Origin: Macrostomum lignano
Lineage: Eukaryota
Assembly (NCBI GenBank): GCA_002269645.1
Contig: NIVC01000754.1
Location: forward strand, 248,001 to 312,000
Direction of reading: 5' to 3'
Length of the DNA stretch: 64,000 nucleotides
Positions 3,754 to 60,947 of this stretch are shown here, one piece after another; the stretch's first letter is position 1, and the number at the start of each line of letters is the position of its first letter. Position numbers and translations under genes: made by a program. The notes beneath the pieces were generated by a model. That model searched no databases, was not told the origin of the DNA, and was given only the letters and a program-made list of their open reading frames with translations.

Positions 3754-4218
3754 TCAGTTCTGGCCAGTCGCGCCCTTTCGCAGCCTCCTCCAGCGCCGCT
3801 TGGCCAGTCTCGGGTCCAGAGAGATTTTGTAGCCGAGCTGAGCGACTGTCTGAGCAACACAAAGGTAGGTGGCCCTTTTCGTTTTGTCCTCCACCGGTTT
3901 CTCCATCATGTCGCGGTTCACCCGGGTCATGATGTTCAGCAGGTCGTCCTCCCTATAGTGCCGCTCGATCATCCGGCACAGGGTTTGCACGAACTTGGAC
4001 CCGGTCTCAGGAAACCTGTAGGAGACCTGGTTCTCTGTGGTGGCGTAGCACAGCAGGAAGTCGGCTTTGGCCGGAGAGAAGGCCGGCAGGGGCTTCGGGA
4101 CTTGCGGCTCGTTAAACTTCGTACTGCTGTCGTCTAGGGGTGCATCGTGATGCTGACCGCGGCAGGCCTGGATGAAAAATATCTTCGGCTTGCCGGCCAG
4201 ACTCGGGCAGCAGCTCGA
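3754..4218 (-). CDS. Caspase exon with catalytic Cys (QACRG), linker and small subunit (p10)
   Basis: [30 protein letters not shown]...[33 protein letters not shown]...; this frame is missed by the ORF track upstream of 3990; stop TGA at 3754-3756. Confidence 0.92.
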
Positions 4219-7200
4219 CTTGAGGGAGGGAGAGTAGCGCTGAGAGTGGCGCTGAGAGTGGCGCTGGGAGTGGCGCTGAGAGTGGCGCTGAGAGTGGCGC
4301 TGAGAGTGGCGCTGAGAGTGGCGCTGATAGTGGCGCTGAGAGTGGCGCTGAGAGTGGCGCTGAGAGCGGCCCTGAGAGGGGCGCTAGGAGTGGCGCTGAG
4401 AGAGACTGGCGCTGAGAGTGGCGCTGAGAGTGGCGCTGAGAGTGGCGCTGGGAGTGGCGCTGAGAGTGGCGCTGAGAGGGGCGCTGAGTGTGGCGCTGAG
4501 AGTGGCGCTGAGAGGGGTGCTGAGAGTGGCGCTGAGAGTGGCACTGAGAGTGGCACTGAGAGTAGCGCTGAGAGCGGCGCTGAGAGTGGCGCTGAGAGTG
4601 GCGCTGGGAGTGGCGCTGAGAGTGGCGCTGAGAGTAGCGCTGAGAGTGGCGCTGGGAGTGGCGCTGAGAGTGGCGCTGAGAGTGGCGCTGAGAGTGGCGC
4701 TGATAGTGGCGCTGGGAGTGGCGCTGGGAGTGGCGCTGAGAGTGGCGCTGGGAGTGGCGCTGAGAGTGGCGCTGGGAGTGGCGCTGAGAATGGCGTTGAG
4801 AGTAGAAATGAAAGTGCCGCTGAAAGTAGCGGAAAAATATTTACAGCTTCTGCACCCACCTGAAATATTTTGGTGACATCAGGAATTTTGCACAGCCTTC
4901 CGTCGAATCCGTACACGCCGTCCGGGCTGCCGTGTGCCATGAGAAAGCAGACAAAGCAGCCGTGCCGCTCCAGCTGGTCTGAGCGCTGCAGCTGCCTCAG
5001 GCATTGGAGAATTCCATCGGCTGTGAGGTCCTCCTCCAACGTCACGGTAAATCGCAGCTTTCCGAAGACTTCCTTCACTCGCTCCACATCCCACTGTGAG
5101 CCTTCGCGATCCTCAAAGCGGCTAGCTGGGTACTTGTTGATGTTGATGATGAGGCAGAAGCCTTGCGGGTCCGTCACTCGGTAGAAATCTTCAAGCCTGA
5201 AATGCCGCCAGAGTTTTTGCTGTTCTGTAGCTGTGTGTGATGTAGCTGTGTGCTGTAGCTGTGTGCTGTAGCTGTGTGTGATGTGTGATGTGTGATGTGT
5301 CGTGAGTGACGCGCTCCCAGAGGTGCTCCGTGCGTACAACGTGCCAGAGCTGCTGATTTCTGCTGTCATGGCGCTGTACCACGGCACGACGGCTGCTGTC
5401 TCAACACCGGACGGCCTATCGGATTTCTTCGAGACATCCTCCGGGGTGCTCCAGGGAGATACGCTAGCGCCGTTCCTATTTATTCTGGTGCTTGACTGGG
5501 TGCTACGGACTGCTCTGCCTTCCAACGACGACGGCTTTCTGCTGCGGCGACGCGTGGGTCGACGCCAACCAGAAAGACGGCTCAGCGTGCTTGGCTACGC
5601 CGATGACCTCGCCCTGCTGTCCTCGACCGTCCTCGTCCTCGTGTCCTCGTCGAGGGCGCCCAACGTCAGCTGGATAGGCTGGTTGCTGTTGCGGCGAGCG
5701 TCGGCCTGGTGGTCAACACGCAGAAGACCGCCGTGCTATGCGTGCCGGACGACACCGAGGCTGCAATCTTCTGCCGAGGCGCTGACGGACAGGCGAGTGA
5801 GCTTCCAAGATGTCAGCAGTTCGTCTACCTCGGCGGTCTGGTTCCCGACGTCCGCGAGGATCTGCGGCGTCGCCAAGGACTTGCCTGGGCTGCCTTTCGT
5901 TCTATAAGGTCAGTCCTGCAGTCCGAGGCCCTACCGGACCGCCAGAGTGCGGAGCTGTTCCAGGCGGTGATCGAGACCGTCCTGTTATACAACTCCGAGA
6001 CCTGGACGCTGACAGACTCGCTCGAGGCTGAAGTCGACGCGGCGCACGCTGGTCTGCTGCGCGCCGCCTTCGAGATCGGCAACGAGCGAGTCACCAACAC
6101 GGCGCTCTATCATCGCGCCGGCCTGGCCCGTCCTAGCGATCTGCTGCGCCGTCGGCGACTCCAGCTGGCAGGCCACGTCATCCGCGCCGAGGCCTACTTT
6201 CCGGAGCCGGTGCAGGAGGTGCTGCTACTTACGTTGTAGGCACCCTACCGGCGGGGACAGGCGAGGACTCGGCGCTACGTCGACTGTCTGCTGGCTGACG
6301 CCGGCGCCCCGGACTCTGCCGGCGGTGCGGCCTTTGTTCGCGCCCAAGCTTCGAAGCGCGCCATCTGACGCTGCTTTTGCGAACTGGCAGCGTACTCTGT
6401 TGTTGTTGTTGTTGTTGTTGTGATGTAGCTGTGTGTGCTGTAGCTGTGTGCTGTAGCTGTGTGTGCTGTAGCTGTGTGCTGTAGCTGTGTATGCTGTAGC
6501 TGTGTGCTGTAGCTGTGTGTGCTGTAGCTGTGTGTGCTTTAGCTATGTGCTGTAGCTGTGTGATGTAGCTGTGTGTGCTGTAGCTGTGTGCTGTAGCTGT
6601 GTGTGTTTTAGCTGTGTGCTGTAGCTGTGTGTGCTGTAGCTGTGTGTGCTGTAGCTGTGTGTGCTGTAGCTGTGTGCTGTAGCTGTGTGTGCTGTAGCTG
6701 TGTGATGTAGCTGCGTGTGCTGTAGCTGTGTGCTGTAGCTGTGTGTGATGTAGCTGTGTGTGCTGTAGCTGTGTGTGCTGTAGCTGTGTGTGCTGTAGCT
6801 GTGTGCTGTAGCTGTGTGTGATGTAGCTGTGTGCTGTAGCTGTGTGTGCTGTAGCTGTGTGCTGTAGCTGTGTGCTGTAGCTGTGTGCTGTAGCTGTGTG
6901 CTGAAGGAACTCACGGCACTGCCAGAGGCTCATCGAAGTAGATCTTGTCGTCGTACCTAAATAGGCAGTGCAAAGTCTTAAGTCAGGAAATTCAGATAGG
7001 AGTCCATCCATGCTCTGTGCTTCATTATATCCTTTTTATTGTTTTTTATTAAAATAACTATTCCTAATAATTTTGAGCTCAAATGCCACACCACAATGCT
7101 TCTTGCTGGTGTCTCACAGCTCGCAGGCAGCTGAACATTAATATTCAACTGGAATCTGCAGTCAAACTGCACTGCAAACTCCCTCAATGCAGCTCAGTCA

Positions 7201-9297
7201 GTGTCTGCTGCCCATTTAAACTAAAAAAATATAAAAATGCCCACTCAGAGCAACTGCAGTCAGCTGCTCAATATTCAATCACAAATTACAGCATATTGTT
7301 TATCAATGATAAATCAAAGTCAGAGAGACATTCTCAGTCGCCATGGAAACTCACCCACGCAGCAGCTCCGCCAGTTCGCTCTTTCCGTTCTGTGTGGCGA
7401 AATCCAGCGCAGTCCTGCCGTCTCTGTCCTTCAGGCTCCAATCCGCCCCTGAGTCCAGCAGAACCCGACCGACTGCGGCGGCGGTGGCGAGGGGCGCAGT
7501 GAAGACTGCCTCCATGAGGGGCGTGAATTCACAAAAATCCGTAGCATTGGCGGAGGCTCCGGCAGCCAGCAGAGCGGAGGCTATTGCAGAATTGCCAGCC
7601 TCGGCTGCAAGGTGCAGGCAACTGACAGTCCATGTATTTGCACAGGTGGGGTCACCCAGCAGCACCAGCTGCTCCCACAGAGCCTCATCACCGCACGAGC
7701 TGTTCTGAGCTGCCCACATCAACGCGGTGCGACCGAATTCGTCAGGCAGGTCGCAGATGCCGCGGGTCGCCGCTCGCCGCAGCCCCGCCGAGTCGCCCGC
7801 CTCGGCCAGCCGCTGCAGTTCCTGTCGATCCGCCTCCTCCTGCAAAGGCGAGCGGGAAATTTGAGCACAGCTGCTCAGCTGCAGCCGCATCGGCACCGCA
7901 GATGCCGCTCACCTGGGCTGTCAGGCCGGAAATCTCGCCGAGTGCATCTACGACCAGCCGCATCTCCCTGCAACAGCAAAAATGAGCAGCCAATTTGCAG
8001 TTTTCTCAAATCAGTCAATTACCATGGCCAAAATAAAATTATCTTGTACGATTAAATCTCTTTGATCTGCTTCAATTTTCGTACTAAATTCAGTAGACAG
8101 AAATTCCTAGTTTTCTGAGCTGCTCGCAGATGGAGTTTCCCAGAGGACAGCAGCAGCTCTGCAACAATCAGCATTGGCGAGAGCGCATCCGACTTCTCAC
8201 ACGCAGCTCATTTTCCATTTCTGCAGCATGAGTTTCCTTCCATCTCAAAATGTCTCACAAAGCACCCGCGCACAGCCTCCCAGTTCTCCATCTACAGCTC
8301 AACACACACACTCCCACTGCACACCGAGGCCCTACAGCTTCCATTATCGACTGAGATCAACCGCCACCCCATTGGCTGGGAGGCAGCCAGCCAATCACAG
8401 CTCTCGTTCATAAGCAGTCAGAGACAGAGACAAGCTCAGCTGACTGGCTCTGATTGGCTGGCCTGAGACTGCAGCTCTGGCCACCCCAGCCGAATGCTGC
8501 AAAACTTGATGGACACAGCAGCGAACTGCTCACTCACCGCTCGATGTAGCTGGCCAGCTCTGAGTGACTGCTGAACCTCGCCAGGTCCGACGCCGTCCGA
8601 CCCTCGCGATTCTTCAGTCCGAGCAGCCGCGACCTCTTCGAGTTTCCGTGCTCAAAGCACTCATTGAACCTCCATTGTCTGAGCAGGTGCAGCAGGTGCT
8701 TGGCGCATTTCCAGCTTCCAGTCCGCGCCGCCTCCATCATCGGAGTGGCGCCGTTGTCGTTCCGCAGCCACTTCGCATCGAACGATAGCAGCGTCAGCAG
8801 CCGCAGGTGGTCCCGCCGGGCTGCCAGGTGCGCAGCCGTGTCGCCGTTCGCGTCAGCCGCCTTGGGGTTCGCGCCCAGCTCAAATAAGTACAAGATGCAC
8901 TTTTCAGTGTGCACGGGAGTCTCAGGAGCGTCGGCCACCAGCATGAGGACGGTCCGACGAGCTGCATCAGCGCTGGTGACCAGCTGGAGCGTTGCCAGCC
9001 GCCGCACTTGGTCGAAGTCACCTCGGATGACGTCATGAGCGAGAGTCTGGAGATCGGCTGGTGAGTCTCCGACGCTTGCCCGGTTGTTGGGGTCCGGCTG
9101 AGTGAGTTCCTGCAACTGCAATTGAGGCACCCAAGCTGCACATTCAAACATGTGAGTGAGTTCCTGCAAAATGCAATCAAGCCTAAGGCATATTTATTTA
9201 AGGCATTTTTACTTACTTTTTCATCAGAAAAGAGAGATGGTTTCTTTTTTCTTTTTATTAACTTATTAAGCAAGGCTTTTGGCCCTCGCTCTGCCAT
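3754..9297 (-). CDS. Ankyrin-repeat caspase, 7 coding exons, about 657 aa (N-terminal basic peptide - ANK module 1 - ANK module 2 - caspase p20/p10)
   Basis: Exons in transcript order: 9297-9217 ([27 protein letters not shown]), 9046-8538, 7967-7913 ([18 protein letters not shown]), 7839-7355, 6956-6915 ([14 protein letters not shown]), 5196-4860, 4218-3754. All six introns are GT-AG and the phases match (0,2,0,2,2,0), giving one open frame of 1974 nt. Caspase motifs [24 protein letters not shown] and [12 protein letters not shown]; several GxTALMxAA / TAAHLAA ankyrin motifs. Confidence 0.85.
4235..4800. repeat. 12-bp minisatellite (agtggcgctgag) in a caspase intron
   Basis: Fills intron 4219-4859. 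Confidence 0.92.
4860..5196 (-). CDS. Caspase large-subunit (p20) exon with catalytic His
   Basis: [22 protein letters not shown]...[21 protein letters not shown]...[20 protein letters not shown]; acceptor catttcag, donor CAG/gtgggt. Confidence 0.92.
5225..6902. repeat. tgtagctgtgtgc 13/15-bp satellite, split by the LINE into 5225-5300 and 6422-6902
   Basis: Same motif on both sides of the LINE. Confidence 0.9.
5295..6422 (+). mobile_element. 5'-truncated, inactive non-LTR retrotransposon (RTE-like reverse transcriptase C-terminal part) inside a caspase-gene intron
   Basis: RT motifs [20 protein letters not shown] and [11 protein letters not shown], followed by YLG and the RTE-type [10 protein letters not shown]...RRLQLAGHV region. 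A short insertion near 5630-5650 shifts the frame, there is a premature TAG at 6237-6239, and a (GTT)n 3' tail at about 6397-6422. Confidence 0.88.
7355..7839 (-). CDS. Ankyrin-repeat module 2 exon of the ANK-caspase gene
   Basis: [54 protein letters not shown]; acceptor tttgcag, donor GG/gtgagt. Confidence 0.9.
8538..9046 (-). CDS. Ankyrin-repeat module 1 exon of the ANK-caspase gene
   Basis: [42 protein letters not shown]; acceptor atctccag, donor CG/gtgagt. Confidence 0.9.
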
Positions 9298-18228: not shown

Positions 18229-19164
18229 TTAGCGCTGCGAGTCAGACTTTTTCACCAGGAACTCGTGCTCCAGCAGCTCCTGTGCGGATCTTCTTCTCCT
18301 GCGGTCCTTGGCGGTGCAGCGGCTGTAGAAATCCCTCAGTTCCGCAGACCGGCCGTCCGGCAGGGCGGGGGCGCCCTTCCTGTCAAGATGCTGGGCCATT
18401 TCCCAGAAGCTTTTGACTCTGGTGAATGGTTTGTTACCGGAGGCCATCTGGAAGACCGAGCAGCCGAACGCCCAGATGTCCGACTCTCTGCTGCACTGCA
18501 CGCATTCCGAGGTGCCGATTCCGAGCAGCTCTGGCGCCATGAAGTTCAGAGTGCCTTTCAATGCCTCCGGGAATGATGAGTGGCGACTGACTATCTGCTC
18601 CAGCTTGATTGACAGGCCGAAGTCAATCAGCTTGATTCGCGTGTTGTCAGCACAAATAATTATGTTCGAGCAGTTGATGTCTCTGTGGATCACGGGCGGC
18701 TGCCGGCTGTGCAGGTAGATCAGCGCGCGGCAGATCTGCGAGCGGTCGGTCAGTGAGCAGCATCATTCATGGGAACATGGAACAGGAGCAAAGGATGCAC
18801 AATGCTCACCTGCTCGCTGAAGTCTCGAATCGTCAGCTCGTACAGTGGCCTGTTGTCGATAAACCTCTCCAAGCTTCGGCCGTCCAGCAGCTCCATGAAC
18901 ACAACGACTGTGGCGGGCTCCGGCTGAGCGATGTGCAAGAACCTGACGATGTTGGGATGCCGCAGTCGGCACAGGTTTCTCTCGCTCTCGACAGCTCTGT
19001 GGATCTCTGTGCTCACAGAGGTTTGGTCATCACCGAGCTGCACAGGCAGTCTGAGAGTCTTGGCAGCGCACCTGATGTCTCTGTCAGTGACAACTTCCTG
19101 AATGTCACCAAAGAATCCTCTTGCAACGAAGCCATCGGAGTCCCAACTCTCCCTGAAAACGGGG
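18229..19164 (-). CDS. Kinase domain 2 (two exons, intron 18736-18809)
   Basis: VARGFFGDI (degenerate Gly loop), CAAKTL, HPNIVRF, IHRDINCSN, LIDFGLS, GTLNFMAPE, SDIWAFGC; stop at 18229-18231. Confidence 0.9.
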
Positions 19165-22100
19165 CTGTTAGGAAAAGTGAAAAGCGAATCAGGATGCGTT
19201 AAGCCGCTGATCAGAATTTTGGCATCGCCTGACAGACAGGCTAAAATGAGGAGATGCACGGGAGTCACAGCAGTTGAATGAATTGATTGGATTTCATTCC
19301 AGTAAAACTCAGCTCTCACAGATTCGCGGCAAATTGCTCGCACTGTTTTTGAGTCTGATCAGGGCTTCTGCTTCATCGAAGGGAATTGAGCACAATATTT
19401 CTCCGAGCTTCAAGCTGGCGCCTCAATGATCAGTGCTCAAAGTATGCGGTGCAACTTTAGCGTGAGCACATGTTGAGGCCGCTTGACTACTGATGAAAAG
19501 TGCAACATTGGTCTCACCTCTGCATCAGCATCATATCGCACAGGTATCTAAGTCTAGCCGAATTACTGTACATTTTTACCTGACGATGAGGAACTCGTGC
19601 CCCATCAGCTCCAGTGCGGACTTTCTGCTTTTGCGGTCCATGGCGGTGCAGCGGCTGTAGAAGTCCTGCAGCTCCGCAGAGCAGCCCGTCAGCAGGGCGG
19701 GGGCACCGCCGCTTCTCAGCTTCTCGGGCAGCGTCTGCGGCATTTTGTGCTCAGCGAAGGGCCGCCTGCCCGAGGCCATCTGGAAGACCGAGCAGCCGAA
19801 CGCCCAGATGTCCGACTCTCTGCTGTACCGCGGGCTGTCCGACTCTTCTGGTGCCAGCAGCTCCGGAGCCAAGAAGTTAAGAGTGCCTTCGGGGGTGGCT
19901 TTGGAGGCTGAGATGTGGCTGACTGACTGCTCCAGCTTGACTGACAGGCCGAAGTCGATCAGCTTGATTCGCGTGTTGTCGGCACAAACAATTATGTTCG
20001 AGCAGTTGATGTCTCTGTGGATCACGGGCGGCTGCCGGCTGTGCAGGTAGATCAGCGCGCGGCAGATCTGCGAGCGGTCGGTCAGTGAGCAGTCATCATT
20101 CATGGGAACATGGAACAGGAGCATCAAGGCTGCACAATGCTCACCTGCTCGCTGAAGTCTCGAATCGTCAGCTCCTCCAGTGGCCTGTTGTCGATAAACC
20201 TCTCCAAGCTTTTGCCGTCCAGCAGCTCCATGAACACAACGGCTGTGGCGGGCTCCGGCTGAGCGATGTGCAAGAACCTGACGATGTTGGGATGCCGCAG
20301 TCGGCACAGGTTTCTCTCGCTCTCGACAGCTCTGTGGATCTCTGTGCTCACAGAGGGCAGCTCATCAACAAGCTGCACAGGAAGTTTAAGAGTCTTGGCA
20401 GCGCACGTGACGCCCGTGTCAGTTCGAACTTCGTGGACTTCGCCGAAGCCACCGCGACCGATGAGGCGAACGGCGTCCCAGCGCTCCCGGAACGGGGGGC
20501 CTTCGGGACTGAGAGGATGCGAATTGAAGCAATGAGGGATAATTTGCATGCTGTAGCTGTGTGCTGTAGCTGTGTGTGCTGTAGCTGTGTGCTGTAGCTG
20601 TGTGATGTAGCTGTGTGTGCTGTAGCTGTGTGTGCTGTAGCTGTGTGCTGTAGCTGTGTGCTGTAGCTGTGTGTTGTAGCTGTGTGTGCTGTAGCTGTGT
20701 GCTGTAGCTGTGTGCTGTAGCTGTGTGTGCTGTAGCTGTGTGTGCTGTAGCTGTGTGCTGTAGCTGTGTGTGATGTAGCTGTGTGTGATGTAGCTGTGTG
20801 TGCTGTAGCTGTGTGTGCTTTAGCTATGTGCTGTAGCTGTGTGTTGTAGCTGTGTGTGCTGTAGCTGTGTGCTGTAGCTGTGTGCTGTAGCTGTATCCTG
20901 TAGCTGTGTGCTGTAGCTGTGTGTGCTGTAGCTGTGTGTGCTGTAGCTGTGTGCTGTAGCTGTGTGTGATGTAGCTTTGTGTGCTGTAGCTGTGTGCTGT
21001 AGCTGTGTGTGCTGTAGCTGTGTGCTGTAGCTGTGTGCTGTAGCTGTGTGCTGTAGCTGTGAGTGATGTAGCTGTGTGCTGTAGCTGTGTGTTGTAGCTG
21101 TGTGTGCTGTAGCTGTGTGCTGTAGCTGTGTGCTGTAGCTGTGTGTGCTGTAGCTGTGTGCTGTAGCTGTGTGCTGTAGCTGTGTGCTGTAGCTGTGTGC
21201 TGTAGCTGTGTGCTGTAGCTGTGTGCTGTAGCTGTGTGCTGTAGCTGTGTGCTGTAGCTGTGTGTGCTGTAGCTGGGTGTGCTGTAGCTGTGTGCTGTAG
21301 CTGTGTGTGATGTAGCTTTGTGTGCTGTAGCTGTGTGCTGTAGCTGTGTCCTGTAGCTGTGTGCTGTAGCTGTGAGTGCTGTAGCTGTGTGTGCTGTAGC
21401 TGTGTGCTGTAGCTGTGTGTGATGTAGCTTTGTGTGCTGTAGCTGTGTGCTGTAGCTGTGTCCTGTAGCTGTGTGCTGTAGCTGTGTGTGCTGTAGCTGT
21501 GTGTGCTGTAGCTGTGTGCTGTAGCTGTGTGTGATGTAGCTTTGTGTGCTGTAGCTGTGTGCTGTAGCTGTGTGCTGTAGCTGTGTGCTGTAGCTGTGTG
21601 CTGAAGGAACTCACGGCAGTGCCATAGGCTCATCGAAGTAGATCTTGCCGTCGTACCTAAATGGGCAGTGCAAAGTGTGAAGTCAGGAAATTCAGATAGG
21701 AGTCCATCCATGCTCTGTGCTTCATTATATCGTTTTTATTGTTTTTTATTAAAATAACTATTCCTAATAATTTTGAGCTCAAATGCCACACCACAATGCT
21801 TCTTGCTGGTGTCTCACAGCTCGCAGGCAGCTGAACATTAACATTTAACTGGCAATCTGCAGTCAAACTGCACTGCAAACTCCATTTAAACTACAAAACT
21901 CATTCAATATTCAATCATAAATTACAGCATAATGTTTATCAATGATAAATCAAAATGATAGTGACATTCTCAGTCGCCATGGAAACTCACCCACGCAGCA
22001 GCTCCGCCAGTTCGCTCTTTCCGTGCTGTGTGGCCAAATCCAGCGCAGTCCTGCCGTCTCTGTACTTCAGGCTCCAATCCGCCCCTGAGTTCAGCAGAAC

Positions 22101-23782
22101 CTGACCGACTGCGGCGGCGGTGGCGGGGTGCGCAAAGGCCGCCCCCATGAGGGCCGTGAATTTCCAGTGACCCCTGGCATTGGTGGAGGCTCCGGAAGTC
22201 AGCAGAGCGGAGGCTGCGGCAGAATTGCCAGCCAAGGCTGCATGGTGCAGGCAACTGTCAGCACATTTATCCGCACAGGTGGGGTCACCCAGCTGCACCA
22301 GCTGCTCCCACAGAGCCTCATCACCGCACGAGCTGCTTTGAGCTGCCCACATCAACGCGGTGCGACCCTCATCGTCAGGCAGGTCGCAGCTGCCGCAGGT
22401 CGCCGCTCGCCGCAGCCCCGCCGAGTCGCCCGCCTTGGCCAGCCGCTGCAGTTCCTGTCGATCCGCCTCCTCCTGCAAAGGCGAGCGGGAAATTTGAGCA
22501 CAGCTGCTCAGCTGCAGCCGCATCGGCACCGCAGATGCCGCTCACCTGGGCTGTCAGGCCGGAGATATAGCCCTGTGCATCCACAACCAGCCGCATCTCC
22601 CTGCAACAGCAACAATGAGCAGCGATGTCGCAGTTGTCTCAAACACGACAATTACGATCGCGAAAATAAACTTTAAGAAGTTGCAGGACAAAATTTTTTC
22701 TCTTATCGATCACATGGATGCCTACCTGCCTACCTACCTACCGACAAACCATTTTTAGTATATGAATTCTTAATTATCTGAGCTGCCCACAGACAGTTTC
22801 GAAGAGGACTGCAGCAGCTCTGCAACAATCAGCATTGGCGAGAGCGCATCCGACTTCTCACACGCAGCTCATTTTCAATTTCTGCAGCATGAGTTTCCTT
22901 CCATCTCACAATGTCTCACAAAGCACTCACGCACAGCCTCCCAGTTCTCCATCTGCAGCTCAACCCACACACTCTCACTGCAATACGAGGCCCTACAGCT
23001 TCTGCGCAACAGCAACTGAGATCAACCGCCACCCCATTAGCTGGGAGGCATGGACACAGAAGCGAACTGCTCACTCACCGCTCGATGTAGCTGGCCAGCT
23101 CTGAGTGGCCACTGCGACTCGCCAGGTCCGACGCCGTCCGACCCTCGGAATTCTTCAGTTCGAGCAGCCTCTTCGAGTTTCCATGCTCCAGACACTTAAT
23201 GAAACTTTTCTGCCTGAGCAGGTGCAGCAGGTGCTTGGCGCATTTCCAGCTTCCAGTCTGCGCCGCCTCCATCAGCGGAGTGGCGCCGTTGTCGTTCCGC
23301 AGCCACTTCGCATCGAACGAAAGCAGCGTCAGCAGCCGCAGGTGGTCCCGCCGGGCTGCCAGGTGCGCAGCCGTGTCGCCGTTCGCGTCAGTCGCCTTGG
23401 GGTTCGCGCCCAGCTCAAATAAGTACAAGATGCACTTTTCAGTGTGCACGGGAGTTTCAGAAGCGTCGGCCACCAGCATGAGGACGGTCCCACGAGCTTC
23501 ATCAGCGCTGGTGACCAGCTGGCGCGTTGCCAGCCGCCGCACCTGGCCGAAGTCACCTCGGCTGACAAGCTGGTCGAGAGTCTGGAGATTCGAACATGTG
23601 AGTGAGTTGCTGCAACTACAACTGAGGCACCCAAGCTGCACACGAGGAAGTAAGTACAAAGAAAAAATATTTTATTTAATTTACTGCTTTAACACTCAGA
23701 AACAAATATAATACTTTAATCAAAATTAAACAGTAATTTAATAAGGTACCTTATCCTGTTCCATAGAGGCTTCACTGCCCAT
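18229..23782 (-). CDS. Ankyrin-repeat protein with two Ser/Thr kinase domains (STE11/MAP3K-like), about 942 aa if both kinases are spliced into one mRNA
   Basis: Exons: 23782-23750 (MGSEASMEQDK), 23581-23079, 22600-22546, 22472-21991, 21656-21615 (YDGKIYFDEPMALP), 20508-20145, 20067-19580, 19164-18810, 18735-18229. All junctions are GT-AG and in phase. The link from kinase 1 to kinase 2 is the least certain, because unspliced read-through gives a TAA at 19576-19578. Confidence 0.78.
19580..20508 (-). CDS. Kinase domain 1 (two exons, intron 20068-20144)
   Basis: IGRGGFGEV, CAAKTL, HPNIVRF, FMELLDG, IHRDINCSN, LIDFGLS, GTLNFLAPE, SDIWAFGC. Confidence 0.92.
20550..21602. repeat. tgtagctgtgtgc satellite, paralogous to 5225-6902
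   Basis: Same motif in the equivalent intron; shares the variant gctttagctatgtg (about 6537 and 20818). Confidence 0.92.
21991..22472 (-). CDS. Ankyrin-repeat module 2 exon of the ANK-kinase gene
   Basis: Paralogous to 7355-7839, with the same splice sites and phases. Confidence 0.9.
23079..23581 (-). CDS. Ankyrin-repeat module 1 exon of the ANK-kinase gene
   Basis: Paralogous to 8538-9046, with the same splice sites and phases. Confidence 0.9.
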
Positions 23783-24119
23783 TATGCGCACCCCGACCAG
23801 CTTCTTCTCAAGTCAGCCTGAAAAGAAAACTGCATGAGCAGCCGCTTCAGCACAGGATATTTTATATCGTTCTGAGAAGACAGTGCCTGAGATATGCACT
23901 GCTCGTGCCTGATTGGCTCAATGCGAGCCGGGTGCTTTGGTCTCGAATTCTCTTACGCACGGAATGAATACTACTTATGGTAGTAGCGGTTGGAGTGCAG
24001 ACTTGCAGATTCGAGTGGGCAGTGAAAAATGGCACAGCTGAGAGAGGAGAGGAGTGGTTTGATGAGAAATAAAATCGACAGTGGTAGATGGAATATGCGG
24101 AGAAAATATGCAGATATAA

Positions 24120-29896: not shown

Positions 29897-32856
29897 ATGG
29901 CTCAATCGGTTCCAATTAATCAACTGTCTATTCCCCAATTACGAGAGGTTCTAGAAAAGATTGATGAGGTAAGTTATTATATAGCATAGGCCTAGTAGTT
30001 AATGGCAACCTAGTTTGTCTAAGGCTGCTGGCCTGCTGTAATAGGCATATTTAGTATTATGAAATAAAATCTATGTTTTAAGAGTCTATTGGTTATTGCA
30101 AATAGCACTTGTTATATGATTAGGCCTACTAATAAATAATATAGCATCATACTCATAAATAGGCCCCTAATATTAAATTAAAAAATAACTTCTTTTGTAA
30201 AAAAACAAGTATGTAACTTTCTGCTTATCTTTTTTCTATAAAAGAGGCCATTTGTAAAATCATTGTTTTTTTATAGTTTTTGTTTGTAGTAGGCTAATAA
30301 CTAATAAATAAACTTTAATTTTAACTTTAACTTTAGTAATACTTTGAGAACAAAGAAGTTAAAGTTACCTAGGGGGTCCAGTAAGCCAAATTAACAAAAA
30401 ACAATGAAATTATGGATGCAATGAAATGAATCTATAGAAAATTAAAGTAGAGAAAATTCCTCATTTAAAAAGTGTAAGTATGCTACAAATGGTAAAGTAT
30501 AGTACTAAAAGTTATATGCTTTTAAAATTATCACTATTTTAAAAAAAAATAGGTATCTAAAATGTTTAAAAATGCATAAACAAAAACATTTAATAAAACA
30601 ATGTTATTGTATTCTGATAAAATAGTAAAAGTGCATTTTTATGTCATATTTTTTCAAAAAAGGTTTTTTTCATAATAAAAATGTACCTTAAAGTTAAATT
30701 GATGCCTCGCATTGCTGGCACTTATTTCTTAATGTAGAATTTATTGTAGATTGTTTTTAGGCATTCATTTTTACTTTCCCCTCCCTAGTTTTGCTGCATT
30801 CTTGTTTGAACATGTCCCACCTAGCATCATGTAGTATATCTGGTAATATATTGGTATTGCTACCAGATTGGGAGCACAAAGTGTGCACCTAAAAATGAAG
30901 AAAATGAATATAAAAGTGAATCAAACACAATTCAAAAGCACAATAAATGCTTTATGGCAAAGTAATAAATCATTAAAAGATATAATATGCTAATATAAAA
31001 TTCAATACCATTGCATAAACATAAAAAGATAGAAATAAAAACTTTTTATCCATTAAAAGTTTATTTATATTAAAAGAAAAAAATATTTTTCCTCTTTTAT
31101 ATAATCTCTTCTTTATTTATTTATTTATTTATTTGTTTGTTTGTTTTTCTCTTTAAAGTGTTCATTACAATTTTTGACTTGCTTTTTCCAACATTTTTTT
31201 TCAATTATCACATACATTAACAGATTAAAGTCTTTATAGGAAAAATATGCTACAAAAGTCAAAGAAATTGTTGCAACAAAATGGTCATAACTTTTTTATT
31301 CTTTTACCAATTTTTATGAACTAAATGCTTTTGAAAACCTCTCAAAAAGATCCATACAATAGAATGCATATATTTCTGTTTTTCAAATTAAAAAATCTTA
31401 TTGGACCCACATGTTAACATAAAAAAATTAGAATTTTGCCCTTTTCTACTAAAAATAAATTGCATAAAATATTGGCATTGCTGGCATTGTTGTTTATTGT
31501 TGGCATTGCTTTTCCATCTTTTTAGCTGATATAAAGAGGTTGTCTAAAGCAATTTACAATACAACTAAAATTACAAGCTGAAAGGTAACAAATAACAAGT
31601 AAAAACTTATGTGTAAAATACTACTGAAGTATATATAACATAAGAACTAACCTAAATATTTATTTGAAACTTAAAAGCTGATTAATTATAATAAAATAAA
31701 AATAGGAAGGTTGTTTCAATAGCACTAGAAGGCATACATAGCAGAAAGTTACAAAATATTGGGAAAGAATTGAATCAAGGTGATGATGCTTGAATATGAA
31801 ATCAATATAATTAATAACTTTTATTTTTTATAAAGTTTATTAAACAAGAATTTGCTCACATTTGCTCATATTGCATATAATGTAGTAGGCCCCTAATCAT
31901 TATCAACAAAGATATTATTTAGGTAGCTCATATCTAGGGAACTTACAATATATGTAATAGTGTAACTTCTTATTAGACTTAATTATGTTTGTTCCTTTAT
32001 ATCTTTGGTCTCATTGACATTGTCATTAACATTAATGATAAATTTGTTGTTTATTCAAAAAATCATTAGCATAAATTTATTAATCAATTAGTACAAAAAA
32101 TCTTAATGGTAGACCATAACATCAATGCAAAATTTTAATGCGTATAACAGACTGGTGTTCAACATTGCACTAAATAGAAATTTGTTAAAATGTTCTTTTT
32201 GTAATAATATTGTTACATTTTTCTCATTTTCTCATTGATAGACTGACACTCAAGGCTAAGCCTAAGTGAATTAGGGACCTCAATAAGGATCTTATGACTT
32301 GTCAATATGCATATAAGCAGCAATTCTTAATTAAAAAAGTAACCTTTTAGAAATGAATAATTTTGCATTTTAGGCCTGAGACAAACTTTTTTAGCCAATG
32401 TTTCTCAATAAACTAACCATTGTAACCACGTTTAATCAAACACAGGAGATGGAATTTCTCACTAGTAGTCTGCAAAATCTCAAGACAGTACAGCAGAAAT
32501 TCATGGACTCTAAAGAGGCTGTGGAACGATTAACTCCCGATCGGGCCCACTCTGAGACTCTGGTGCCAATGACCAGCACCCTGTATGTGCTGGGCCGGCT
32601 GTGTCCGCCTGACAAGGTCACGGTGGACATTGGCACAGGCTACTACGCCGATATGACACCAACTCAAGCGGCTGATTTCTTTCAGCGCAAAGCCGAATTT
32701 CTGGCTAAAGAGATTGAAAAAGTTCAGCCGGGGTTGCAGGAGAAGTATGCCACGAAACAGGTGGTGACGGAGGTGCTTCAGGCCAAGGTTAAAGTGGCCG
32801 TGTCCAGCCAACAGGCCAGCACTGCTCAGGCTCAGGCGGGTGGCAACCAGCCCTGA
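29897..32856 (+). CDS. PFDN5: Prefoldin subunit 5 (alpha-type), 2 exons, 160 aa
   Basis: Exon 1 29897-29968 (MAQSVPINQLSIPQLREVLEKIDE/gtaagt) joins in phase 0 to exon 2 32446-32856 (EMEFLTSSLQNLK...LVPMTSTLYVLG...VTVDIGTGYY...FFQRK...LQEK). The sequence matches PFDN5 as I recall it. Confidence 0.95.
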
Positions 32857-34334: not shown

Positions 34335-34497
34335 TCTTGAGCTAAGCGGCTTAATAGCAAAAGCAACGAATGCTACTACAAGGTTTTGACGTGTAGAATT
34401 TATTAGAAAAGGTTAGTTCCTTAATTTGCTTGCAAGACACTGATGTACTTTTATATTACAATCCCCCCTTACTGCTCAAGCGCATTCGCAGTCTGTC

Positions 34498-34947
34498 ATG
34501 CCTGAGATTGTTGAAGCCGCTGGGCTGCTGGTGTTCTCTCGGACAGGCAGCGAGCCCCTCTACCTCATGCTGCACTCGTCGCGCACCCAGGACCGCTGGA
34601 CGCCGCCCAAGGGTCACCTGGAGGCTGGGGAGACCCTGCTGGACTGCGCTATGCGAGAGACGCGCGAAGAGAGCGGCCTGACCCGGCTGAAACTGCTGGA
34701 TCAGTTCGCCGCTACAAAGATCTGCTACAACAGCCGGAGGCATCTGGAGCGATTGAAGAGTTGCACCTTCTGGCTGGCTGAAGTCGCTGACGAGGCCGAA
34801 GCTGCCGCGGTCCGGCTGTCGCACGAGCATCGCGACTTTCGCTGGTGCCAGCTAGCGGAAGCCACCCAGCTGGCTCGCGATGGCTTTCCAGAGATGCTGC
34901 CGCTGTTGGAGCAAGCGCACAACTACATAGTTTGCGGCGGGGCCTGA
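34498..34947 (+). CDS. NUDT2: Bis(5'-nucleosyl)-tetraphosphatase (asymmetrical Ap4A hydrolase), Nudix family, single exon, 149 aa
   Basis: AAGLLVF, WTPPKGH, Nudix box GHLEAGETLLDCAMRETREESG, FWLAEV and RLSHEH...RW are NUDT2 hallmarks. Confidence 0.92.
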   Translation: MPEIVEAAGLLVFSRTGSEPLYLMLHSSRTQDRWTPPKGHLEAGETLLDCAMRETREESGLTRLKLLDQFAATKICYNSRRHLERLKSCTFWLAEVADEAEAAAVRLSHEHRDFRWCQLAEATQLARDGFPEMLPLLEQAHNYIVCGGA

Positions 34948-36375: not shown

Positions 36376-38030
36376 CATTTACCATGTATGGTGAATGTAC
36401 CATAAATTAAATTTCGCTTAAAAATGCACTCTAATACTGAAAGCATTTTTCTATGATGACTTCTGCGTTCGGATCTTTCACGAATCCAATTGTCTATGGT
36501 GAAGTGATTAATAAAAAATTAAAATTACTAAACTCTAAACTTTGTTCTGAAAGTATATCACAGATAATTAGATAAATACTGAATTTATCGCTTCACTTTC
36601 AGCATTCTTTTTTATCAACTTTTTATATAGCCACATTGTATTTATGACCTCTTCAATCAGAAAGTTTACTGCCATGACAAGCTGCATTGACAAGGGTGAG
36701 TAGAAAGCCGCGTTCACCCTGGTCTCGGGTTTTTATTTTCACTATAATTTTCATTGACACCCAGATACTCAGTTGTTGGGCTAGCCTCCCAGATCCTCAA
36801 TCCAGACTACTCCAGACTCTGTTTACCTGGACTGAATTTCAGTACGCCCTACGCATACCTGTGCGCGCATACGCTCTTAGAAAACAAATCTTTAATCAGC
36901 CGTAAATGGCGCACCTGCCTGTGATGCTCCTGAGTCTTGTGGAGTATATTTGCATAAACATGCACTATTCAACCTGTGCGGTAAAGGTTCGTAATCAGGT
37001 GGAAAATGCCAGACTGAAGTTATTTGCTAATTGACTCAGCTGGTCTTCCTTTTTGCGGGTGGCCTCGTTGCTGACTAACCAAAACATCTGTGCCAACAGG
37101 GAAGCAGTCAGTGCCTTTGCTGTCTTGAGAGAAATCGTCATGCTTGTTAGTAGTAGGGCTTGAAATTCGACTATTTACAATCCTTATTAGCTAAAAGCAG
37201 CAGTACATATAAAGTGCAATGTTTGCTGTAGTGCTGACTTTAGGGGTTAATGTTTTTTTAAAATGTACTATTAGTTCATTTTAGGGCTAAAGGTAATACT
37301 CGTAAGAGAGCAAACCAGCTAGATCAGCAAAAAATACACTTTGACAAATTCGTAACACGACACAGCTGTTTGTTGGCTCATGTATTACACAGTTGTGCCC
37401 GACAGCCCTCAGTAAAGATGCTATTCATCGTTTTCATATTACAGTCCAAGACTCGAACTGTGAACTCAAAACTTCGGGCCAGAAATGCAGCAGCAACAAC
37501 AGCAGCAGCAGGCTAAATTGCAGACGAAGAAACTCCAGCAGCAGCTCGGACGACAGCGACCGTCAGTGCATGCTGATTGAGCCGCAGCACAGCAAGAGTT
37601 CGTTTGCGGCTGAGGCTGCAGCAAACAGCGTCGTATTCTGCGAAATTCAGAGCTGCGCAACTCGGAGCAGCCACTCGGCCGACAGCTGCTTGTCAACACT
37701 GTCGGGCACTTGCTGCGAAGTTCTGCCCAACCTGTGAGTTGCACTGCTTCATTCATGTTTAACCCGTTTCTAATGCGTCTGTTGCGACTAAAATACAAAG
37801 GTCTGATTGTCGTGGAATTCACGTCCTGGTGGCGGTGACCAAACCCCAGTTACACCTAAGTTAGTAAGCTTGTGTCAGTGTATGTATGTGTGTGAATAAA
37901 CCTAGAGTCTAGAGTACTATAGAGTCTTGCTCACTTGCTCAAGTGATGAGCGGAAGCCGGACGAAAGTATCTGCAGCAGCTAGAGGCCCCTTCAACTCGA
38001 AACTACATCGATGTTAGATTTTTCCAACAG

Positions 38031-39592
38031 CCGAACTCAAATCCAATCTTCTTCAGTTCGCCGTTTCCTCGGTTTCCACAAAACTCGAATTTCAACCATC
38101 GGCCCGAGGTTGCCTGGTGTTCGCGTGATCGAATCTATGAGGACTTGGAAAATGCCGGGCACAACTCCGAGTACCAGTGGGAACAGGCTGTGCAGAGTCG
38201 GCCAAGTCAACAGCAATATTGGCAACCGTTGCAGCAATCAAATAAGCGGAAGCAGCCGCAGAAGAACCAACGACCCAGCGTTGCCGCTGACAGCTTTGTG
38301 AGTTTCATTTGAACTGTTGTTGGCTCTTTAACGGCCAGGTAAAAACGTAAAACGTAGAAACGTAACGTCTCTGCGTCAACGAAATTTGACAGCTGCAATT
38401 CAACTGCCAAAATATTGACTGACCAACTCCCTAACCTAAACCCTAACCCTAATCCTAAAGATGCAGAAGGGTCCCAGTGTCGAATGGCCAACTGAAGGCA
38501 TCTATTCACCTGCTCGCGCCCGCAACACCACCGTGCACCGCAACAAATGGGCGTCACGGCTTGACGATAGCGTCTTGCTTGACGATGTCACCCCGCCACC
38601 AAAACGGGCGCAGCGCAAGAAGAGGCCGCAGTCTCCGGCGGCGTGAGTTCCTTCTGGTTGCATGTGAAATCTCGAGCTTTGGGCGTGTGGTTTGGCTTCT
38701 ATTGAAAGTTAAAGGAAACCGCCTCCCGAAGTGTCAGTTGCTGGACCAGCCTCCCAGAGTGTCAGTTGCTGGACCAGCCTCCCAGAGTGTCAGTTGCTGG
38801 ACCAGCCTCCCAGAGTGTCAGTTGCTGGACCAGCCTCCTAGAGTGTCAGTTGCTGGACCAGCCTCCCAGAGTGTCAGTTGCTGGACCAGCCTCCCAGAGT
38901 GTCAGTTGCTGGGCCAGCCTCCCAGAGTGTCAGTTGCTGGGCCAGCCTCCCAGAGTGTCAGTTGCTGGACCAGCCCGCCTCCCAGATCCTCAGTTGCTGG
39001 GCCAGCCTCCCAGATCCCCAGTTGCTTGGTTGATGAATATTCTCAGCAGCTTAGTTGATTTTCTTGTGCTGCTTTTAGCAAATCAGTACAGCAGCAAAGA
39101 CTGAAGCAGCAACAACAACAACCGCAGCTGCAGCAAAGGCAGCTACAGCAACAGCAACCGCAGCAGCAGCAGAGGCAGCAGCAACAGAAGCCGTTGCAGC
39201 AGCAGAAGCAGCAGCAGAAGCAGCAGCAGAAGCAGCAGCAGAAGCAGCAGCTGAAGCGGCAGCAAAAGCAGCAGCCGCCGACCCCACGCTGCGCCCGCTG
39301 CCCATCAAAGCCGCGCCCCTGTCCGATGCAACGACAGCGGCTGCTGAAGAAGCACCAGAAGAAGCGAAAGCAACGGCAGAATCGCGACGCCGAAGGCTGC
39401 GTGCCCGGCGAGGTCTCCTGCGGCGACTGTCAGCCGCCTCGCATCCAGCTGTGCCCCGCTAAGCAGGGCCGAGAAAGGTTCTCTCGCGTGAAGCTGCAAA
39501 CTCAACCGGGCCGCTTCATCACTCGCCAGGTGCTCTTCTTTGATGGCGACTATCTGTACAGACCTGCTCAGCCCGAGTGCCCCTGCTACTGA
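38031..39592 (+). CDS. Uncharacterised Gln-rich protein with a Cys-rich C-terminus (last three exons, 5' end unresolved)
   Basis: Exons 38031-38297 (phase 0-0), 38467-38642 (phase 0-2) and 39079-39592 join in one open frame at good splice sites (ccaacag, TTT/gtgagt, gatgcag, GC/gtgagt, cttttag). No recognisable domain. Confidence 0.5.
38730..39020. repeat. 28-bp intronic minisatellite (gtgtcagttgctggaccagcctcccaga)
   Basis: Direct inspection. Confidence 0.9.
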
Positions 39593-60700: not shown

Positions 60701-60947
60701 ACTCGAACACCCCGACGGGGCAGGGCTGAGTCACCGTCAAGCCTGCATCTGTCTCCGGCCAGCAGATGAAGCCGTCAAAGGTGACCGGACACTGCGGAGG
60801 CGACCGTGGCATTGTTGAGTTTCTTGGCGGGGTCAGCAGCCGACCCAACAGTTTAATTCGAGCTTTCAGCGCCGCTTCCAGGCAGTCAGCTTCTCGCTGC
60901 TTCATCGCTGGGAACACAGACTCCAGCTGCATCATCTGCCAGTTGGC
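43700..60947 (-). CDS. Class B1 (secretin-like) GPCR with two tandem hormone-receptor ectodomains; first and last exons unresolved
   Basis: Exons: 60947-60537 (HormR 1), 53696-53349 (HormR 2), 50793-50687 (TM1, VGYGVS), 50613-50508 (RLHCQRNSIHINLF, TM2), 49209-49050 (TM3, W..IEALHL, IGWG), 46595-46462 (TM4, ECL2 CW), 44753-44662 (TM5), 44584-44434 (KST.VL..FGIYY, NSFQ), 43894-43700 (GFFVSLLLCFVNSE). All junctions are GT-AG and in phase. A terminal exon probably lies near 42300-42390. Confidence 0.9.
43950..44300. repeat. 16-bp degenerate minisatellite (cataatcccatcatgt)
   Basis: GPCR intron. Confidence 0.8.
44820..45415. repeat. 13-bp (ctgacaccctacc) then 12-bp (aaaaccctacct) minisatellites
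   Basis: GPCR intron. Confidence 0.88.
45975..46395. repeat. 15-bp minisatellite (tctagatcccatcct)
   Basis: GPCR intron; reverse complement of 53705-54795. Confidence 0.9.
46670..47490. repeat. 23-bp minisatellite (agattagcaatccattattgaat)
   Basis: GPCR intron. Confidence 0.9.
48076..48800. repeat. (CTGT)n microsatellite with ATGT interruptions
   Basis: GPCR intron. Confidence 0.95.
49240..50420. repeat. 24-bp minisatellite (atgcttgtcgggatagttcctttg)
   Basis: GPCR intron. Confidence 0.92.
50870..53330. repeat. 20-bp minisatellite (cacaacctgcagtctatctg) with an internal duplication of about 870 bp
   Basis: GPCR intron. Confidence 0.93.
53349..53696 (-). CDS. Hormone-receptor (HormR) domain exon 2 of the GPCR
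   Basis: C...CPPAFDSAMCWPGTPAG...VSCP...AWRTCLDNGTW...WTNFSDC; phase 0-0. Confidence 0.9.
53705..54795. repeat. 15-bp minisatellite (aggatgggatctaga)
   Basis: GPCR intron, adjacent to the HormR 2 acceptor. Confidence 0.92.
55295..56240. repeat. 18-bp pyrimidine minisatellite (ccctcctctccctctcta)
   Basis: GPCR intron. Confidence 0.93.
56570..57030. repeat. 16-bp minisatellite (gtttgtgatgtgtata)
   Basis: GPCR intron. Confidence 0.88.
57560..60525. repeat. 21-bp minisatellite (gggagattcagacacaggtga), about 140 copies, with higher-order structure
   Basis: GPCR intron, adjacent to the HormR 1 donor. Confidence 0.95.
60537..60947 (-). CDS. Hormone-receptor (HormR) domain exon 1 of the GPCR
   Basis: C...CPVTFDGFICWPETDAG...QPCP...ATRRCRQDGTW...YSNYSDC; phase 0-0. 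Confidence 0.9.

Follow-up and report, generated by a model that had tools for sequence, protein, structure and literature searches.

A predicted ankyrin–tandem-kinase gene and its paralogs in the flatworm Macrostomum lignano

Plant tandem kinase proteins (TKPs), such as Rpg1, WTK1/Yr15, WTK3/Pm24, and Sr62, are composed of RLK/Pelle kinases, and one of their domains is commonly a pseudokinase; they are associated with race-specific immunity and a helper NLR. In animals, two kinase domains are combined in RSK/MSK (AGC and CAMK), in the JAKs (pseudokinase and kinase), and in obscurin/SPEG, with one domain regulating or activating the other. GCN2 also consists of a pseudokinase and a kinase (PMC12867742). 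Here, we describe a gene that is predicted to encode an ankyrin (ANK) cassette followed by two kinase domains in the flatworm Macrostomum lignano, a species amenable to transgenesis. The gene was found on the minus strand at positions 18229-23782 of a stretch of 64,000 nucleotides (nt) from assembly Mlig_3_7 (GCA_002269645.1), hereafter called the window, which corresponds to approx. 266,229-271,782 (~266,229-271,782) of contig NIVC01000754.1. Its nine exons add up to 2883 nt and form a frame of 960 codons that is free of internal stops.

The original prediction likened this gene to plant tandem-kinase resistance proteins. The likeness holds for architecture, i.e., two kinase-fold domains joined in one predicted polypeptide via duplication or fusion, but not for lineage: the kinase scores higher against Pkinase than against PK_Tyr_Ser-Thr (309 vs 227 bits), and its closest structures are those of MAP3K, WNK, and STE20 kinases. 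In contrast to TKPs, the domains are STE/MAP3K-like, an ANK region precedes them, both are intact, and the gene belongs to an animal, as had been proposed and is supported. The pairing of an intact with a degenerate kinase is a further likeness to TKPs, but it occurs in other members of the Macrostomum family (P0133 and P0021); at the locus itself, a kinase-pseudokinase pair, also considered earlier, is not borne out, because both domains retain the CAAK lysine, HRD, DFG, and APE.

The locus also differs from the animal systems. Unlike the JAKs and GCN2, it has no degenerate domain, and the same unusual HRDIN loop is found in both kinases. The two kinases of RSK/MSK come from different groups, whereas those of the locus, kinase 1 and kinase 2, arose by duplication of a single module; in general, the animal proteins are ancient, dissimilar pairs with fixed roles, while the domains described here are partly gene-converted duplicates present in one to three copies. 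MAP3K5/ASK1, MAP3K2, WNK1, and STE20-like kinases provide the best structure matches; however, their catalytic loop is HRDxKxxN rather than HRDINCSN, and their non-kinase regions are unrelated. ILK, TNNI3K, and RIPK4/ANKK1 are ANK-kinases of the TKL type, but the domains described here do not score as TKL-type, with Pkinase outscoring PK_Tyr_Ser-Thr. Finally, the ANK-caspases of M. lignano share a homologous ankyrin pro-domain with the gene, whose effector is a kinase pair instead of a C-terminal caspase.

The nine-exon model and the junction between the kinases

All introns of the model begin with GT and end with AG (8/8), and the splice sites are intact throughout (16/16). In the Pfam search, Pkinase matched twice at full length, with a total of 309 bits and a best stretch spanning 4-263 of the 263 profile positions, and Ank_2 matched in four stretches. 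Together with the open frame, these matches confirm that two complete kinase domains follow the ANK cassette; in the same search, only ANK and kinase domains were found in the gene, and no Peptidase_C14 caspase domain. As had been noticed earlier, both kinases are interrupted by a phase-0 intron, of 77 nt in kinase 1 (intron 6) and 74 nt in kinase 2 (intron 8). It follows ...FSEQ in either domain, and the two introns are 98.6% identical.

The closest relative is P0001 (BOX15_Mlig034440g1, 985 amino acids), encoded at locus L001 on contig NIVC01000875.1; 97% of the query aligns with it at 78% amino-acid identity. The two loci share the ANK cassette, the micro-exon, the two-exon kinase modules, the kinase-kinase junction, and the boundaries of exons 2-5. 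L001 differs in that it contains three kinase units, another exon 1, and an exon 2 of 598 nt, and in that no stop lies directly past the donor. L001 was also considered as an ortholog from another species; this was rejected, because both contigs belong to GCA_002269645.1, and the loci are thus paralogs. The two-exon kinase module (phase-2 entry, phase-0 intron after ...FSEQ) is also present in L001 and in L003, the locus of a more distant paralog (BOX15_Mlig009993g1, protein P0133). Because these paralogous loci carry the same exon boundaries, the nine-exon structure is not a chance pattern.

The key question is whether kinase 2 belongs to the same mRNA as kinase 1. The donor AG/GTAAAA at 19580/19579 (slashes mark splice sites) is indeed in phase with the acceptor ttttcctaacag/C (TAACAG/C) at 19165/19164, both sides being in phase 2, and the spliced protein would read ...HEFLIV-S-PVFRESWD.... 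Left unspliced, kinase 1 ends as expected, the frame continuing with a single R codon and then TAA (19578-19576). A second acceptor, TTTTCAG/G at 19153/19152, lies 12 nt downstream. This alternative, raised in the original prediction, is in frame, and its equivalent is used once in a paralog model, the separate UniProt entry P0002, where three units are joined. The kinase-kinase junction of the locus was judged by four indirect lines, namely start sites, paralog junctions, constraint, and 3' signals.

Firstly, kinase 2 contains no in-frame ATG between the upstream stop and domain residue 90, which lies past the VAIK lysine and helix C. The trans-spliced leader of M. lignano terminates in ATG (PMC8629364); however, a leader joined at 19164 or 19152 would place this ATG out of frame, with a stop after 16-20 codons, and kinase 2 as an independent spliced-leader gene was therefore rejected. 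Secondly, homologous junctions are found at both paralogous loci. In L001, the junction reads AG/GTACAA...TTTCCTAACAG/CCCCGTTTTCAG/G (protein HEFFIV/SPVFRDSWDF), and in L003, it reads AAAG/GTACAG...TTTTCTAACAG/CCC in phase 2 (protein FLALFE/SPPILCDWEN). Thus, the donor and acceptor sequences and the phase of the kinase-to-kinase junction, which served as the test for a tandem subfamily, are common to the gene, L001, and L003. The BOX15 gene models were derived from a StringTie/TACO RNA-seq assembly that was cut using spliced-leader and poly(A) data (PMC5730564). The lack of a usable start, the out-of-frame leader ATG, and the homologous junctions agree with the earlier view that kinase 2 could not stand alone. 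Thirdly, kinase 2 is constrained: compared with unit C of L001, the ratio of nonsynonymous to synonymous substitution rates (dN/dS) is 0.48, and for the N-flank of kinase 2 it is 0.37. The distinctive ARGFFGD glycine loop of kinase 2 is also found in the L001 paralog. Fourthly, the 3' signals speak for the long form: neither AATAAA nor ATTAAA is present in the 415-nt intron 7, and a candidate poly(A) signal conserved in L001 lies past the kinase 2 stop. The stop directly past the donor is not conserved: read-through continues for 11 codons in L001 and 7 in L003.

These observations give little support to the one-kinase isoform that had been proposed, given the signal-free intron 7 and the unconserved stop. 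A 30-nt micro-exon suggested at 19547-19518 also did not hold up; its counterpart in L001 has 28 nt and is out of frame, and it is missing from P0001 and P0002. A protein search with the junction peptide returned 35 candidates, all of them short proteins, with 0 spanning the junction. Taken together, the four lines make splicing of exon 7 to exon 8, giving ANK-kinase-kinase, the most likely model of the gene. The coordinates of its parts are collected in Table 1.

Table 1. Predicted parts of the ANK-kinase-kinase gene and of the neighbouring ANK-caspase gene (window coordinates)
Feature	Position	Strand	Description
Candidate core promoter	23860-23916	-	CCAAT-like box 23916-23909, TATAAAA 23866-23860, ~80 nt 5' of ATG; putative function, from sequence
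Exon 1 (predicted)	23750-23782	-	MGSEASMEQDK; ATG in cataATGG (Kozak) context; donor AAG/GTACCT; least certain exon
Exon 2	23079-23635	-	N-terminal region and ankyrin block 1; Pfam Ank_2/Ank_4
Exon 3	22546-22600	-	55-nt linker joining the ankyrin blocks; boundaries the same in L001 and the neighbouring ANK-caspase gene
Exon 4	21991-22472	-	Ankyrin block 2
Exon 5	21615-21656	-	42-nt micro-exon (YDGKIYFDEPMALP), phase 2 end; joint of ANK cassette and effector; conserved in L001 and the ANK-caspase paralog
Minisatellite filling intron 5	20549-21603	-	13/28-nt unit, ~76 copies; Tandem Repeats Finder
Exon 6	20145-20508	-	Kinase 1 N-lobe: GRGGFG, CAAK
Gene-conversion tract, kinase 1 copy	19927-20354	-	428 bp including intron 6; 97.6% identical to 19019-18595
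Intron 6	20068-20144	-	77 nt, phase 0, within kinase 1
Exon 7	19580-20067	-	Kinase 1 C-lobe: HRDINCSN, DFG, APE; terminates at donor AG/GTAAAA
Intron 7	19165-19579	-	415 nt, between the kinases; alignable with L001 (78% identity overall, both ends higher)
Exon 8	18810-19164	-	Kinase 2 N-lobe: ARGFFG, CAAK; acceptor TAACAG/C
Gene-conversion tract, kinase 2 copy	18595-19019	-	425 bp including intron 8
Intron 8	18736-18809	-	74 nt, phase 0, within kinase 2
Exon 9	18229-18735	-	Kinase 2 C-lobe: HRDINCSN, DFG, APE; tail ...KKSDSQR; stop TAA 18231-18229
Candidate poly(A) signal AGTAAA	18163-18168	-	~60 nt past the stop; aligned with ATTAAA of L001; predicted function
ANK exons of the caspase gene	9135-8538, 7967-7913, 7839-7355, 6956-6915	-	Boundaries equal to those of the kinase gene
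Peptidase_C14 exons of the caspase gene	5249-4860, 4245-3796	-	His (MAHG) and QACRG motifs

Lineage and duplication of the kinase modules

Both kinases retain the VAIK-type lysine (CAAK), the helix-C glutamate, HRD, DFG, and APE; in kinase 2, an alanine replaces the first glycine of GxGxxG. Among solved structures, MAP3K5, MAP3K2, and WNK1 (tied) and STE20-type kinases are nearest, with E values of approx. 1e-25 (~1e-25) over nearly the whole domain, a modest match that implies no orthology. All PDB matches at E<=1e-20 are MAP3K, WNK, PLK, STE20-type, or TLK kinases (57/57), and none of IRAK, Pto, RLK, ILK, TNNI3K, or RIPK4/ANKK1 appears among them. By its sequence, the kinase is a STE/MAP3K-like Ser/Thr kinase and not one of the plant RLK/Pelle type. 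In an exhaustive HMMER search of 1.8 billion representatives with the kinase 1 C-lobe as query, the high-scoring matches of at least 40% identity whose names were looked up all came from M. lignano (9/9), and identities outside the species were 25-40%.

The similarity of the two kinases is distributed unevenly along their length. At the nucleotide level, they are 71% identical in the N-flank, 97.6% in the core, and 75% in the C-flank, and synonymous divergence (dS) is 0.69, 0.03, and 0.51, respectively; at the protein level, the core is 96% identical and the flanks 54-57%. In the N-flank, kinase 1 of the window groups with unit A of L001 and the single-kinase paralogs (85-90%), and kinase 2 groups with units B and C of L001 (80-81%); in the core, units of one locus are most alike to each other. 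These groupings show that the duplication is older than the split of the paralogs and that the core was homogenised within each locus by gene conversion. An assembly artefact was also considered as the source of the tandem and ruled out, as the unit flanks differ at 25-29% of nucleotides (dS 0.5-0.7).

Paralogs carry one, two, or three kinase units. At L001 (20115-23674), three units are present, and the middle one, unit B, is an exact chimera: its first 725 nt match unit C and everything from nt 190 onward matches unit A, in both cases with 100% identity, and a stretch of 535 bp is the same in all three units. This pattern indicates one unequal crossover inside the converted core, of which a three-unit array would be the expected product. 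Since the module is phase-symmetric (2-2), tandem copies stay in frame when the end of the first copy serves as a donor. Another array of kinase modules was observed at L003 (5016-17280 of NIVC01001483.1), with further kinase-like units upstream at 5016-6949 and 7929-8209; its product, P0133, is 60% identical to the kinase 1 C-lobe.

Weighing of the model and its alternatives

As a whole, the explanation that we consider probable comprises an old in-gene duplication of the kinase, an mRNA encoding ANK-kinase-kinase, and a division of labour between ankyrin recruitment and kinase output. The main mRNA would join exon 7 to exon 8 and encode a protein of 960 amino acids. The ankyrin cassette may act as a recruitment or recognition 'pro-domain', which would be shared with ANK-caspases, including one encoded 9 kb downstream. 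The kinases would then serve as the output and would probably be activated by induced proximity, the built-in second kinase being a possible intramolecular partner. The functional part of this explanation, i.e., ankyrin recruitment, proximity-activated kinase output, and an intramolecular partner, is a tentative guess.

Several observations weigh against this model. The donor GTAAAA deviates from the species consensus GT[G/A]AG and is followed immediately by a stop; a dN/dS of 0.5-0.6 reflects moderate constraint only. Moreover, reads from the homogenised core would map to multiple places, so the paralog models may contain assembly ambiguities; P0001 has two units, while its locus has three. 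As judged by alignment to ASK1, the catalytic-loop lysine is missing from both domains (HRDINCSN, not HRDxKxxN). The HRDINCSN loop is common to the whole close subfamily; the usual HRDIKCSN is found in P0138, an ANK-tandem-kinase paralog that is more distant. Kinase activity is thus plausible but not assured.

The remaining difficulties concern the 5' end and the status of this particular copy. No protein more than 81% identical to the model was found in the protein collection, though another gene of the window (Nudix, P0131) is present there, and an exact look-up showed the 960-amino-acid model and two neighbouring open reading frames (ORFs) to be absent; this copy therefore has no model in the RNA-seq-based annotation. 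Exon 1 (MGSEASMEQDK) shows no homology to its counterpart in the paralogs (MAKRWKK.../MAERGPK...), the ancestral exon 1 being missing, and exon 2 carries a 41-nt deletion (557 vs 598 nt in the paralogs), with its first ~16 codons (LGCLSCSCSNSLTCSN) representing a shifted reading of the ancestral frame. Furthermore, window segments 23952-23865 and 13847-12719 adjoin each other in L001 (29085-29171 and 29182-30603). Because these flanks are contiguous there, a gene-bearing segment of ~10 kb looks inserted in the upstream region of another gene. Besides the ANK-kinase-kinase gene, the apparent insertion contains 4.4 kb of repeats. The CCAAT-containing flank 23952-23865 is homologous to L001 29085-29171, the upstream region of a different gene, and the apparent insertion left the CCAAT box and TATAAAA ahead of a Kozak ATG. 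Translation might instead start without the predicted exon 1, as the ATG of a spliced leader attached at the exon 2 acceptor (23635) would be in frame (MLGCLSC...). Thus, a captured promoter may drive the copy, or the copy may be silent.

The second of these possibilities leads to the rival explanation that survives best: the locus would be a silent or decaying dispersed duplicate, a ~10-kb piece of a cluster copied into another gene's promoter with the loss of its own first exon, and the tandem reading would then be true of the paralogs only. The missing annotation, the non-homologous exon 1, the shortened exon 2, and the contiguity of both flanks in L001 all fit such a history. However, 960 codons remain open over nine exons with every splice site intact, a TATA box and a Kozak ATG are present at the new 5' end, and kinase dN/dS is below 1 (<1). 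In addition, multi-mapping would cost the homogenised family its reads, which makes the absence from the annotation weak evidence. We therefore regard a silent duplicate as rather unlikely.

The kinase modules might also act as alternative effector cassettes, with exon 5 spliced to exon 6 in ANK-K1 and to exon 8 in ANK-K2, so that one-kinase proteins would accompany or replace the two-kinase form. The phase-2 end of exon 5 fits the phase-2 start of either module; hence, the join of exon 5 to exon 8, with kinase 1 skipped, keeps the frame. The two units of P0001 against three at its locus would likewise agree with a skipped unit, or with one collapsed in the model. Nevertheless, none of the annotated family proteins found joins ...EPMALP straight to a K2-type N-lobe (SPVF/ARGFFGD), and ANK-K1 would require a 3' end in intron 7, where no signal was seen. 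Alternative use of the two modules is accordingly an unlikely account of the locus.

A further possibility concerns function, i.e., that the protein is a pathogen-sensing immune receptor convergent with plant TKPs, with one kinase acting as a decoy or regulator. The gene combines a recognition-type repeat domain with tandem kinases. Its paralogs are clustered and variable in copy number, and the pro-domain is shared with caspases; these traits of the family, and those that follow, are common among immune gene families. Degenerate kinases occur in two relatives: in P0133, a kinase is followed by a degenerate kinase that is likely a pseudokinase (HRN and GFG for HRD and DFG), and in P0021, a degenerate kinase (DFP) precedes a kinase. 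By PDB comparison, the N-terminal 390 residues are generic ankyrin repeats, and the ANK part of the gene is 75-82% identical to that of P0001 and P0003-P0012. Variation in this region adds to the case. In pairwise comparisons among three cassettes, dN/dS is 0.94-1.21 overall and 1.2-1.6 in block 2, although the bootstrap intervals include 1. Across 17 paralogs and seven repeats, Shannon entropy averages 1.36 bits at the canonical binding positions (33, 2, 3, 5, 13, and 14) compared with 0.52 bits in the framework, and 0/20,000 permutations gave a difference as large. These values are a hint of a diversifying binding surface; however, surface positions vary most in any ANK family, whatever the selection, and relaxed constraint on any ankyrin surface would look alike. 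Moreover, the kinase lineage is unlike that of plant TKPs, and both kinases look equally competent here. An immune sensor is thus improbable, and this reading is speculation. We find it still more doubtful, though conceivable, that the entire ANK-effector family represents animal modular immune or cell-death receptors, in which a diversifying ankyrin domain would have been exon-shuffled to different effectors: a caspase, a single kinase, or tandem kinases, the last including kinase-pseudokinase pairs that would work like plant tandem-kinase sensors or RIPK/caspase-8 platforms.

That the gene ends with kinase 1 at TAA 19578-19576, kinase 2 being an untranslated leftover of tandem duplication, is very improbable: the weak GTAAAA donor with its immediate stop and the single kinase of most family members would agree with it, but kinase 2 is fully open and constrained (dN/dS 0.48), the junction sites are conserved at two paralogous loci and used by transcript-based models, the position of the stop shifts in both, intron 7 lacks AATAAA/ATTAAA, and the ...KKSDSQ tail of single-kinase proteins sits on kinase 2, not on kinase 1.

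The ANK-effector family and its genomic setting

The ANK-kinase-kinase gene belongs to a large, fast-changing family that has so far been found in M. lignano only. Its members share a layout in which a two-block ANK cassette is followed by the 42-nt micro-exon and then by a C-terminal effector module. Most relatives in M. lignano consist of ANK and one kinase (690-704 amino acids), with a kinase 1-like N-lobe and a kinase 2-like tail (KKSDSQ). Other annotated members are ANK-caspases (P0020, P0026, P0028, P0031, and others), an ANK-kinase-caspase (P0027), a Ras-ANK-kinase (P0018), and proteins with ANK and two canonical kinases (P0138, in several near-identical copies); some of the long models are possibly annotation fusions. 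Judging from P0138 and from P0133 and P0021, tandem kinases are a recurrent arrangement within the family. In a literature search that included the locus tags, no paper was found to deal with the ANK-kinase genes or the tandem-kinase genes.

ANK-caspases have been described as unique to parasitic flatworms (PMC11463336). In the free-living M. lignano, precomputed Pfam assignments place ankyrin and Peptidase_C14 together in P0020, P0026, P0028, P0031, P0032, P0041, P0042, and P0044, and for P0020 the combination was confirmed by hmmscan. The flatworm ANK-caspase paper mentions an M. lignano caspase with a kinase-like pro-domain, and the architecture of P0027 matches it. The ANK cassette of the kinase gene is 51-69% identical to that of the ANK-caspases P0020 and P0028.

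The window itself contains a paralogous ANK-caspase gene at 3796-9135, also on the minus strand and 9 kb downstream of the ANK-kinase-kinase gene, with a likely exon 1 from 9297 (MAERGPK...). No annotated protein was found for it. The dS between the ANK regions of the two genes is ~0.10; their front end is shared recent sequence and the effector alone differs. In the large intron of the caspase gene, two overlapping reverse-transcriptase-like ORFs (YADDLALL...) were noticed on the plus strand at 5302-6239; they are probably a retrotransposon fragment.

The intron after the micro-exon contains a CACAGCTACAG-type minisatellite in three paralogs (20549-21603 and 6419-6903 in the window, and approx. 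19366-20074, i.e., ~19366-20074, in L001). Because the same repeat fills the same intron in all three, it has been inherited together with the cassette. On the coding strand, the intron-5 minisatellite is open in several frames. Minisatellites are abundant in the window as a whole (54 Tandem Repeats Finder rows), in line with the 15% of simple and tandem repeats published for the M. lignano genome (PMC5730564).

The window also includes three annotated genes on the plus strand: a two-exon prefoldin gene (29897-32856, 160 amino acids), a single-exon Nudix hydrolase (34489-34947, 152 amino acids, P0131), and a gene for a 404-amino-acid protein with no Pfam match (37456-39592). On the minus strand, ORF pieces with Cys/Trp patterns (FDGFICWPETDAG...CRQDGTW) at 53277-53693 and ~60600-60935 resemble the hormone-receptor domain of class B G protein-coupled receptors; a 21-nt minisatellite of nearly 3 kb (57559-60526) lies between them.

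At present, this work amounts to the annotation of a hitherto unannotated paralog rather than the demonstration of a new signalling system. Should the two-kinase protein be produced, it would be a clear animal tandem kinase, created when a phase-symmetric exon module was recently duplicated within its gene. Traces of the mechanisms are still readable at these loci, in the gene-converted core and in the unequal crossover that gives one to three units. The family also illustrates domain shuffling, one ankyrin cassette having been joined, together with its micro-exon and minisatellite intron, to a kinase, to tandem kinases, to a caspase, and to a kinase plus a caspase. Finally, this shuffling ties an uncharacterised kinase family to the recently described flatworm ANK-caspases, which suggests that kinases and caspases are recruited via the same kind of pro-domain.

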